From contig NIVC01002654.1 of the NCBI GenBank assembly GCA_002269645.1, positions 62,001 to 126,000 on the forward strand: a DNA stretch of 64,000 nt, written 5' to 3'. This DNA comes from Macrostomum lignano. Taxonomy: Eukaryota. The notes under the pieces were generated by a model. The model made no database searches. It saw nothing but the letters and a program-made list of their open reading frames with translations, and was not told where the DNA came from. The first letter of the stretch is position 1. The number at the start of each line of letters is the position of its first letter. This document shows, piece by piece, positions 26,201-29,200 of this stretch. A program made the translations under genes and the position numbers.

Positions 26201-29200
26201 TCAACCTAATAACCAGATAAGCGAGAATGACCAACCTAATGACCAGATAGGCGACAATGACCAACCTAATGACCAGATAAGCGACAATGACCAACCTAAT
26301 CACCAAATAAGCGAGAATGACCAACCTAATGACCAGATAGGCGACAATGACCAACTTAATGACCAAATAAGCGACAATGACCAACCTAATGACCAGATAA
26401 GCGACAATGACCCATATATTAATCAGATAAGCGACAATGACCCATTTATTGATCAGATTAAAAACGATGACCGATTTACTAACCAGGTAAGCGACGATGA
26501 CTAATTTAATGACCAGATATGAGCGAATGCCTCATCTAATGATTAACCGTCAGTGATATATCTAATGACGCTATCGAAGCAGCACTATGACCAATCTAAT
26601 TACTAGATTTGAGACAATGACAAATTAAAGGACTATTAAACACAATGACCGCTTCGATGACTGAAAATTAGCAGCTCACCTCCCAGTTTGAGTCCGGCAG
26701 CTTCGCGGCCAACGTAGACATCTTTCTGGCCCATGCCGACCATGACGCCCTGGTGACGAGGCCGGCCAACCACGGTAGGGACGCTGGCCAAGAGGTTGGA
26801 CCGGTTCGACATCACGGCAGCTTTGGTTAGAAGCGAGCCGGAGTCCAACACCAGAGCCGGTTCGTCATTCCAGGAGTCTTCGTCCCGGTCATTGTCATCG
26901 TCAGATGATTCAGCAGAAGCTGCTGCCAGGAGAGGCATATCTGCAGATCATATTGTAAGCTCTTACCGGTTATATTTGACATTTGACTCGCTTGACCGGG
27001 GAAGGAGACAGCAGACACAACAGAATTGGAGACAGCAGACACAACAGGATTGGAGACGGCAGACACAAGATGATTGGAGACAGCAGACACAATAGGATTG
27101 GAGACAGCAGACACAACAGGATTGAAGACGGCAGACACAATAGGATTGGAGACAGCAGACACAACAGGATTGGAGACAGCAGACACAATAGGATTGGAGA
27201 CAGCAGACACAACAACATTAGAGACAGCAGACACAACAACATTAGAGACAGCAGACACAACAAGATTGGAGACAGCAGACACAACAACATTGGAGACAGC
27301 AGACACAACAAGATTGGAGACAGCAGACACAACAGGATTGGAGACAGCAGACACAACAGGATTGGAGACAGCAGATACAACAAGATTGGAGACAGCAGAC
27401 ACAACAACATTGGAGACAGCAGACACAACGGGATTGGACACAGCAGACACAACAACATTGGAGACAGCAGACACAACAACATTGGAGACAGCAGACACAA
27501 CAGGATTGGAGACAGCAGACAACAGGATTGGAGACAGCAGACACAACAAGATTGGAGACAGCAGACACAACAGGATTGGAGACAGCAGACACAACAGCTT
27601 TGGAGACAGCAGACACAATAGGATTGGAGACAGCAGACACAACGGGATTGGAGACAGCAGACACAACAACATTGGAGACAGCAGACACAACAGGATTGGA
27701 GACAGCAGACACAACAGGATTGGAGACAGCAGACACAACAAGATTGGAGACAGCAGACACAACAAGATTGGAGACAGCAGACACAACAAGATTGGAGACA
27801 GCAGACACAACAGGATTGGAGACAGCAGACAACAGATTGGAGACAGCAGACACAACAGGATTGGAGACAGCAGACACAACAGCATTGGAGACGGCAGACA
27901 CAATAGGAACAGGTAGCAGATTTAAGCTCAAAGGTTTCCTTCAAATTTTTCTCACGTTTTATTTTTCGCCGTTTCATTTTTTTAGCAGCCTCGGTTGGTT
28001 TGACAGCTTTTTCGGCCTCTGGTGAAGGGCCACGTCCGCCGCGTAGACGCATCACCAGGTGAACGGTGCAGCCCGGCGTCAGCCCTGCACTGGCAACAGT
28101 CCAGTCTGATTCCAGCTGCTTTCCGTCAGCAACTAAACGAATCTGATCCACTGGGATGCGCTGCCGTTCGCTTATTGCCTCCTTGAGCTCAAGAATATTT
28201 TGATTGGGCGTAAGGCTAACTGTGAACTCTTCGCTAGTGAGCGTTCTCACTTTGACGGTGAATTTAGATGGAAGAGCTGCGGAATGAACAGGCTATTTCT
28301 GTACAATTTTTTGTCTAAATAAAAAATCTAACAAGCAATAACATCGAAAAAAAAATCTCAGACTCACATTTAGCATCAGCTTGCCGCATTTGTGCGGCTT
28401 TCCGATTCTGTTTAACAGACAGCACCACCGGGTGCTTGTCGTGAACGCCGGCCAAAAGCAGCGAAGCTTCCAGATCGTCAAACAGCCGAAGAGCTTCTTC
28501 GCTCTTTCCGGTGTTTGACAACTCCTGACCATCAATGATACCGTCGGCAATTTGCGCGAGAATTTCCGCCTAAAAAATTTAGACGAGTCATTATGAGAGT
28601 AACTATCCATATTGAGTTCTTTTTAATTCTGCGTCATTATAAAGTTTACTTTACGAGAAGGAAAAATGCCTCGTCAACTCCTTCCTTATAAAGAGGTAAA
28701 AAATTGGGACAAATGCCTCGTCATCTAACAAACTCACAAGCCCGTCGCCAGCCTCCTTGATCGGTTCCCAGCCCTGTGTGGCTAAGATATCAACCTTCTC
28801 GTCGTCTAGCAAAGTTTGCAATCGGCCAGTCATGTCCGATTCAAATTTTTCGTCCTGTCAGAAATAGATAGCATTTACAATTAGTATATAACAATACCGG
28901 TCAGACAAACCTTAGAGATTTAGTATATTGTGAAAGTGTGCTACTATATCATAAGGATAACGATTTCATCTACCTTTTCACGATCCTCAACCGCTACGAA
29001 GCTGGTAAATTGGCAAGCCACTGAGTAGCGAATCGATAATTGAACCAGGTTGGCCTTCTGCTCCAGTCGCTTCAGCTGTAAATTTGATTGGGTTTGCTAA
29101 TTTGTCACCTTTGAAATCTCAAATGAGTATACCTATTTTTATAGCTCTCTACCAATACGTTTATTGTGAACCTAATACGAGAATAACTTCAGTGGTGAAC

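Follow-up and report, generated by a model that had tools for sequence, protein, structure and literature searches.

Why should a poly(ADP-ribose) polymerase (PARP) carry an exact copy of one surface of actin? This question is raised by a stretch of 64,000 nucleotides from the flatworm Macrostomum lignano (NCBI GenBank assembly GCA_002269645.1, contig NIVC01002654.1, positions 62,001 to 126,000 of the forward strand), which we call the window and in which all coordinates are counted from the first letter. A small exon on its minus strand encodes the DNase I-binding loop (D-loop) of actin without a single replacement, and this exon almost certainly belongs to the gene for PARP4, the vault PARP. 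To our knowledge, PARP4 and the vault are abundant and conserved, and neither has an agreed function. The M. lignano exon is an unusually reduced example of a documented but unstudied arrangement, namely a PARP4-like protein with an embedded actin N-terminal fragment; the exact copy of this one actin surface occurs in PARP4 of many invertebrates and has been kept at least from the time when sponges and bilaterians diverged.

In actin, residues 5-58 take in the D-loop, which is part of subdomain 2, and the subdomain 1 strands beta1-beta3. The actin-derived coding exon (26940-26680 on the minus strand, 261 nucleotides, phase 1-1) lies between the acceptor ctgcag/AT at 26941/26940 and the donor G/gtgagc at 26680/26679, and a preliminary description of the locus, which had proposed an exon of this length and phase with these splice sites, is borne out by the sequence and by two UniProt models. 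Codons 26770-26720 of the same strand specify 17 residues, all of which (17/17) are those of actin V35-D51, and the next residues are VYVGREA, again as had been described. Upstream of this D-loop block, 13 residues at 26857-26819 face ALVVDNGSGMCKA of actin; the actin residues kept outside the block are D11, G13, K18, Y53, G55, and E57, and the exon ends 8 codons past E57-A58. When the window was searched with beta-actin by tblastn, the sole match was found at 26869-26699 (33/57 identical, E 1.8e-13), and no other piece of actin was detected in the 64 kb at E<1. The claim that actin is missing beyond about residue 60 therefore stands, given this single segment. Identity is uneven along the match, with 17/17 inside the D-loop block and 16/40 outside, and a run of 17 identities, given 33 matches in 57 columns, has a probability of ~2e-4 under random placement. 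While the open reading frame (ORF) of the window alone did not match Pfam Actin at E<=0.01, a phmmer search with the exon peptide retrieved actins throughout. In terms of the actin family, therefore, the part that is present is homologous to actin, whereas the full four-subdomain fold of ~375 residues with the phosphate-1, phosphate-2, and adenosine motifs is absent.

The preliminary description had also considered the phosphate-1 flank to have diverged from actin. This flank does differ from actin, but its DSGSLLTKA cannot be taken as recent drift because GS[LF]xxKA is the common state in bilaterian members of the family, as described below; the drift peculiar to M. lignano is instead in the stretch 26818-26780. 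A compensated frameshift was considered for that stretch and dropped, since the other two frames, one of which contains a stop, were no closer to the family consensus when compared by eye and without scoring.

The sequence leaves us in little doubt that 26940-26680 is a real exon of the M. lignano PARP4 orthologue. The gene in the window is ordered as PARP catalytic, VIT, vWA, ubiquitin-like, actin fragment, acidic repeats, and HSP70 substrate-binding-like domain, and the inferred splice junctions from 28854 to 17332, which were read by hand, are all in frame. By phmmer, the exon peptide is 100% identical to residues 928-1008 of an M. lignano protein of 1196 amino acids named “Poly [ADP-ribose] polymerase” (A0A1I8HY60, P0031), and further matches in this species were its cluster mate A0A1I8J8J5 (P0181) and a fragment of a paralogue (P0032, 94% identical). 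Both P0031 and P0181 join the PARP-VIT-vWA exons to the actin exon at exactly the proposed splice sites, and their sequence runs on through GLKLG-A-VVSS. Also, the PARP4-like protein of Dreissena (P0202) is collinear with the window by tblastn through PARP, VIT, vWA, ubiquitin, actin 5-52, and HSP70 381-526, and its own ubiquitin, actin, and HSP70 segments are positioned at 1321-1392, 1417-1469, and 2177-2323, respectively. The in-frame junctions, the splice sites of P0031 and P0181, and the collinearity with P0202 thus assign the exon to a PARP4-like gene. In oysters and mussels, furthermore, RefSeq isoform models contain the orthologous actin segment, and together with the two UniProt models they speak indirectly for inclusion of the exon in mRNA, the absence of which had been named as a second ground for giving up the preliminary description.

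The upstream domains of the gene are those of PARP4, with an H-Y-E catalytic domain that is followed by VIT and then by vWA. The flatworm, oyster, and mussel proteins align with the same catalytic residues, H482, Y522, and E592 (in oyster numbering). Pfam PARP families were matched by ORFs of the window and by P0031, VIT was matched with E 1e-32, and VWA_3, VWA, and VWA_2 were matched in P0031 and P0181; the vWA span in the window is 31282-29374 (minus strand). The ubiquitin-like exon has a phase-1 acceptor and an inferred phase-1 donor (AAAC/gtgaga), is in frame with both the preceding exon and the actin exon, and is left out in frame by the model P0031. Given that most exons of the chain are in phase 1-1, any of them could be a cassette. 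The HSP70-like domain encoded by the exon 18086-17332 corresponds to profile positions 379-481 of Pfam HSP70 (E 4e-13), that is, only the beta substrate-binding subdomain. No BRCT domain was found upstream of 34874 by tblastn with mollusc orthologues; P0031 and P0181 start inside the regulatory domain, and an assembly gap (a run of N) is present at 41.6-42.4 kb.

How widely is the fragment distributed? A profile search with the flatworm, oyster, and mussel proteins yielded 116 PARP4-like proteins, and Pfam Actin was found inside those of molluscs (Mytilus, Magallana/Crassostrea, Ostrea, Saccostrea, Pinctada, Dreissena, and Physella), the hemichordates Ptychodera and Glandiceps, the tunicate Clavelina, the hydrozoan Hydractinia, and the sponges Corticium, Amphimedon, and Halichondria. 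In all of these proteins, the match covers profile positions ~2-66 only. The fragment was also located by phmmer in Mytilus edulis PARP2_3_4 (P0049, residues 1293-1348) and Magallana gigas PARP4 (P0057, residues 1255-1319). Its position is shared, too: it follows vWA and, where present, the ubiquitin-like domain, with an acidic stretch before it, an order that Dreissena and Physella share. In Mytilus, the intron on the 3' side of the fragment is in phase 1 and lies a few codons past E57-A58, as in M. lignano, and the acceptor in Ptychodera is also in phase 1. The oyster isoforms part directly after KEAT, and an exon junction is therefore placed there as well. A comparison with orthologues, which had been proposed as a check, thus gave the same truncated fragment in the same place of PARP4-like proteins across animal phyla. 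In the vertebrate PARP4s that were retrieved, no Pfam Actin is recorded, and a motif scan agrees with this.

A word-indexed protein search with the exon peptide gave only short ORFs of actin first exons, among which P0001, P0003, and P0009 look like the same PARP4 exon. Two other proteins (P0033 and P0050) have up to six tandem and strongly diverged copies of the actin N-terminus (…STVDRPKTPGIMVGTDQACSYVGDKAQSK…), in which, unlike in the PARP4 module, the D-loop is not conserved. We also considered a fragment captured by a transposon, given the minisatellites and repeated units nearby, and rejected it because only one copy of the actin exon exists in the window and its orthologues are found across phyla.

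The alignment of 17 family members with actin (18 sequences) has invariant columns at D11, G13, G36-H40, G42-D51, Y53, and G55, while the flanks vary. All members hence share an invariant D-loop core and a cut-off near actin residue 58-70; similarity to actin ends after ~58 in bilaterians and after ~70 in sponges and the hydrozoan. Ahead of the loop, actin reads GSGMCKA; the corresponding motif is GS[LF]xxKA in the bilaterian members (molluscs, hemichordates, and the flatworm) and GMxxxKA in the sponges and the hydrozoan. Reduction has gone furthest in M. lignano, where the GFAGDDxPRAxFP hairpin that all other members keep has been lost; the D-loop is nonetheless untouched. Even in the full-length alignment of three species, the D-loop block is among the longest identical runs.

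This constraint is also seen in the codons, for which the Mytilus, Ptychodera, and Clavelina loci were compared with the M. lignano PARP4 exon. Between M. lignano and Mytilus, 14/51 bases of the block differ, and between M. lignano and Ptychodera 8/51, all of these differences being silent; the block of Clavelina has one replacement, Q41K. In the flanking codons, by comparison, the proportion of nonsynonymous differences (pN) was 0.14-0.50. The Nei-Gojobori method returned Nd=1-2 even for identical peptides, which is a path-averaging artefact of CGN/AGR arginine codons, and we therefore report raw silent and replacement differences. The ratio of nonsynonymous to synonymous divergence (dN/dS) in the block is ~0, and synonymous sites are at or near saturation. 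Since these sites are near saturation and the peptide is almost unchanged across phyla, both recent capture and constraint at the nucleotide level are excluded. On these alignments, it is highly probable that the module is ancient and under purifying selection centred on the D-loop, and the selection is concentrated on G36-G55, the D-loop and its stem. The idea in the preliminary description that the D-loop had been selectively retained in a fragment with no possible ATPase fold is thus sustained by the cross-phylum module and its silent-only divergence, and recent capture from a host actin gene, which that description had named as grounds for giving the idea up, is excluded by the deep orthology of the fragment. 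A short loop can accordingly bear actin-grade constraint outside the actin fold, and the D-loop sequence is therefore considered to be set by its recognisers and not only by the folding of actin.

What, then, might the loop do in PARP4? The preliminary description had suggested a bait or an actin-interface mimic, and either would be plausible on the evidence. The module cannot be an ATPase because it is truncated to the first ~55-70 residues of actin. Because the loop has stayed identical to that of actin outside the actin fold for hundreds of millions of years, we favour mimicry and consider it on balance probable that the module works as a surface mimic of the D-loop for a D-loop partner; whatever recognises the D-loop on actin would also recognise the copy in PARP4. 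In F-actin, the D-loop (V43, M44, V45, and M47) enters a hydrophobic cleft of the adjoining subunit, between its subdomains 1 and 3, and this cleft is as invariant as the D-loop. We tentatively propose the same cleft on the barbed face of actin as the preferred partner, although this assignment may well prove wrong; the frozen sequence of the module would then be explained by the invariance of the partner cleft itself. In such a mechanism, the module would dock PARP4 onto G-actin or the barbed ends of filaments, the vault would be brought along through the C-terminal MVP-binding region of PARP4, and actin or actin-bound proteins would thereby come within reach of the PARP domain. The 1/3 cleft of actin is also bound by short and largely unstructured segments such as the WH2 and beta-thymosin motifs and by other ligands, and the same binding is predicted for our module; there is no sequence relationship between them, and the module is the cleft-binding loop of actin itself instead of an amphipathic helix. 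In the PARP4-like protein of Amphimedon (P0222), which contains the actin fragment, a weak WH2 match below the Pfam cutoff was found at residues 2118-2143 (E 1.9e-4). Another protein of 629 residues (P0040) has a WH2-like LLESIKSGSMLQRA in addition to an actin fragment and a region rich in Pro.

Several results weigh against a D-loop mimic that acts on actin. No module was found in the retrieved PARP4 models of vertebrates, echinoderms, amphioxus, an annelid, a nemertean, rotifers, or Trichoplax, and the module is hence dispensable for the core function of PARP4. The MVP-interacting domain (Pfam PF26156), which is present in many PARP4 orthologues, was not detected in the window either by Pfam on the inferred 3' exons (17214-15709) or by tblastn with the C-termini of orthologues. 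When the isolated peptide of 86 amino acids was modelled by AlphaFold2 with the family alignment of 17 sequences, the mean predicted local distance difference test score (pLDDT) was 59 and the predicted template modelling score (pTM) 0.32, with the D-loop appearing as a weak hairpin; a model of such low confidence is too weak to tell a folded module from a linear motif. Furthermore, the neighbouring pieces in PARP4-like proteins (ubiquitin, a histone H3 tail, the substrate-binding domain of HSP70, and half of 14-3-3) would fit a general bait or adaptor logic at least equally.

Such a bait is the main rival explanation and is indeed possible, if in our view somewhat unlikely: the D-loop copy would stand in for the substrate of enzymes that attack or modify the actin D-loop, so that an attacking enzyme is sensed, trapped, or ADP-ribosylated by PARP4 or the vault. 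The candidates are protealysin/grimelysin-type proteases of pathogens, cross-linking toxins of the ACD kind, and the endogenous MICAL. The linker that holds the module after vWA carries, depending on the lineage, pieces of other very conserved proteins, which include ubiquitin with the LRLRGG tail, an H3-tail-like KQTARKSTGGKAPR, the HSP70 linker and substrate-binding domain, the C-terminal half of 14-3-3 (profile positions 124-223), EF-hands, Snf7, synaptobrevin, PDZ, and the ribosomal 60S acidic P protein. Toxins and effectors favour many of these conserved proteins as targets or cofactors. A decoy has to match an invariant original, which would suit the frozen sequence of the module; strict conservation since sponges, however, suits a housekeeping interaction equally, and retention across phyla is patchy. 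In mammals, exon 30 of PARP4 (>300 amino acids), which is the positionally equivalent region, is disordered and has been under recurrent positive selection, and Daugherty et al. (2014, PMC4038475) proposed it to be an interface between host and pathogen. Like the module, exon 30 lies in the linker between vWA and the MVP-binding domain as a proposed interaction interface, but it is fast-evolving and has no actin-like segment, whereas the invertebrate module is frozen. In its widest form, this idea would take the whole invertebrate PARP4 linker as an array of molecular mimics that bait effectors and toxins so that PARP4 or the vault traps or ADP-ribosylates the attacker, with the mammalian exon-30 region as the vertebrate descendant of that interface and the M. 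lignano exon as a minimal bait; we regard this extension as speculative and unlikely. Quite improbable, in turn, is an internal ligand, in which the hydrophobic and basic-flanked D-loop would be bound in cis or in trans by the HSP70-like domain of the same protein, or would be an automodification site or pseudosubstrate of PARP4, and would thereby regulate or oligomerise PARP4. The D-loop sequence resembles an Hsp70-binding motif in terms of the specificity of DnaK/Hsp70, and the actin module is accompanied by an HSP70 fragment that starts at the interdomain linker in M. lignano, oysters, and Dreissena. Nonetheless, no HSP70 fragment was detected alongside the actin module in the proteins of sponges, the hydrozoan, hemichordates, and the tunicate, and exact identity to actin over 20 residues is more than a site of the Hsp70 type would require.

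It might also be supposed that the peptide is not selected at all and that the block is kept identical by recent capture or repeated gene conversion from host actin genes, which are multicopy and would need to convert a block of only 51 nucleotides. Orthologous fragments are, however, in the same place in PARP4-like proteins of distant phyla, and the flanks of the block are family-specific and unlike actin (T/A/V at 33-34, A/V at 52, and non-D at 56), so that conversion tracts would need the same limits of ~60 nucleotides in every lineage. Lineage-specific changes also exist inside the block (Q41R/K/M, and H40Y in Physella), and synonymous sites differ freely between lineages; on this comparison between phyla, the explanation is scarcely credible. 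Still less can be said for a non-functional relic or annotation artefact, namely an exonised piece of an actin pseudogene with a frame that is open by chance. The exon does sit between two long minisatellites in a repeat-rich genome, the ORF of the window alone escapes Pfam as noted above, and the paralogous model P0032 hops frame just past REAA, for which an assembly error or decay is possible. Against these, the frame is open with phases that match on both sides, two models include the exon, orthologues exist across phyla, and decay is non-uniform, with the cross-phylum conservation and dN/dS of the block already described.

Returning to the D-loop mimic, its predicted interaction, with either the cleft on the barbed face of actin or the enzymes that act on the D-loop, offers a testable handle on the function of PARP4 and the vault in the form of a peptide of ~60 residues and its point mutants. 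M. lignano is tractable, with RNA interference and transgenesis in place. Integrated decoys are familiar from plant NLRs such as RRS1-WRKY and RGA5-HMA, in which, likewise, a piece of a host protein within a larger sensor or enzyme is possibly a mimic of an effector target. PARP4 is not an NLR, and we draw this only as an analogy; if the bait were nonetheless true, the integrated-decoy principle would be widened from plant NLRs to an animal ADP-ribosyltransferase.

The module shares with conventional actin V35-D51, the six further residues listed above, and the acidic stretch in front, but lacks ~85% of actin, among this the phosphate-2 and adenosine motifs as well as subdomains 3 and 4, and hence can neither have the ATPase fold nor polymerise as a subunit. 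An extra actin domain in PARP4-like proteins was noted by Perina et al. (2014, DNA Repair 23:4, PMC4245714), who also mention actin or actin-binding domains for those of Salpingoeca, Capsaspora, and Acanthamoeba. Compared with the actin-bearing PARP4-like proteins (clade 5, vault), M. lignano has the same gene family, the order PARP-VIT-vWA-[ubiquitin]-actin-[HSP70], the truncation, and the invariant core, and differs in the loss of GFAGDDxPRAxFP, which leaves the D-loop as almost the sole part identical to actin. The mention by Perina et al. is one sentence on a Pfam/SMART hit and is silent on the N-terminal-only extent and on the constraint of the D-loop. Beyond that paper, our search found no literature on PARP4 with an actin-like segment or D-loop. 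Recent structural papers on human PARP4 do not treat the module, as vertebrate PARP4 is without it. The domain combination is thus already on record and is also carried by automatic annotation, while the constraint centred on the D-loop appears to be undescribed.

Features of the PARP4-like gene and its actin-derived exon in the window (phases are given as acceptor-donor; a dot marks a feature without strand)
Feature	Position	Strand	Remarks and basis
PARP regulatory and catalytic, VIT, and vWA exons	29374..34757	-	Pfam; collinear with Dreissena, Magallana, and Mytilus PARP4-like proteins
Two upstream exons	28854-28738 (phase 0-0), 28569-28368 (phase 0-1)	-	Sequence, UniProt model, tblastn
Ubiquitin-like exon with RLRGG tail	27956..28276	-	Pfam ubiquitin E 1.7e-17; collinear with the Dreissena ubiquitin domain
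24-nucleotide minisatellite, intron 5' of actin exon	27004..27908	.	Repeat scan
Actin-derived exon	26680..26940	-	Acidic preface and actin ~5-58, then GLKLG; boundaries as in P0031 and P0181
Acidic preface	26858..26940	-	Placed like the acidic N-terminus of actin; acidic stretch in relatives too; sequence, alignment
Remnant of strand beta1 and phosphate-1 loop	26819..26857	-	Bilaterian-type GS[LF]xxKA; sequence, family alignment
M. lignano-specific diverged stretch	26780..26818	-	Insertion of one amino acid; relatives have GFAGDDxPRAxFP; family alignment
D-loop block (actin V35-D51)	26720..26770	-	Invariant core of the module; 18-sequence alignment, silent codon changes only
30-nucleotide minisatellite, intron 3' of actin exon	25489..26519	.	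Repeat scan
Two small acidic exons, both phase 1-1	25439-25320, 25046-24957	-	Diverged copies at ~23200-22760 and ~20540-20157
Two QERDIDAAI exons	~19496-19371, ~19187-19034	-	In frame with the PARP4 exon chain
Exon with Gln/Pro-rich region, HSP70 linker motif DLLLLDV, and HSP70 substrate-binding-beta-like domain	17332..18086	-	Phase 1-0, in frame

In the downstream part of the gene, the acidic exons belong to a unit that is present in three copies on the minus strand (20144-20544, 22746-23274, and 24839-25488) with 70-75% nucleotide identity and an LF[DE]E motif. These units are separated by minisatellites of 14, 24, and 30 nucleotides, their exons are all in phase 1-1, and the third copy seems to have a truncated first exon. 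A segment with the QERDIDAAI/PERNIDAAI motif is also found near ~21500 on the minus strand. The ORF of the HSP70-like exon runs past the inferred donor (GAG/gtgagc) into a hydrophobic tail, and retention of the intron would give a tail-anchored isoform. The UniRef proteins of M. lignano that were matched by this HSP70-like ORF are frame-hopping models made from pieces of the window. Long microsatellites of the (CTGT/CTGTCTGTC…) type occupy PARP4 introns at 16170-17000 and 33717-34383, where they produce spurious long “CLSV” ORFs in all frames.

With regard to the linker of PARP4-like proteins in other species, P0193, P0197, P0199, P0204, P0208, P0220, P0230, and P0277 are examples of the collage of conserved-protein pieces. 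H3-tail-like stretches (MRRTKQTARKSTGGKAPRTLR, RTNQTARMSTGGKAPAR, and KQSARKSTGGKCPRIQ) were noticed in the linker of molluscs, at ~1480-1505 in Dreissena (P0202), ~1330-1350 in Littorina (P0212), and ~1690-1750 in Mytilus (P0239 and P0244); that of Dreissena comes ~14 residues after the actin fragment. LRLRGG is kept in the ubiquitin-like domains of the window and of P0201, P0202, P0205, P0206, P0212, P0217, P0239, and P0244, and the residue after RGG is Pro in most molluscs, Arg in M. lignano, and His in Dreissena.

Elsewhere in the window, the minus strand encodes an NWD1-like STAND NTPase at 1995-4024, with a NACHT/nSTAND P-loop region and an NWD1-type winged helix (Pfam HTH_NWD1, E 1e-15), a weak remnant of a retroelement integrase (rve) at 7415-8128, and an MFS transporter gene at 11777-14720 with an intronic minisatellite that is open in several frames. 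Three long uninterrupted ORFs lie on the plus strand, namely a uracil-DNA glycosylase with a long N-terminal extension (56877-58004), a lipase-like protein (Lip_C; 58792-60147), and a nucleolin-like protein with acidic/Ser repeats, RRM, and a Gly/Arg-rich tail (60714-63137).

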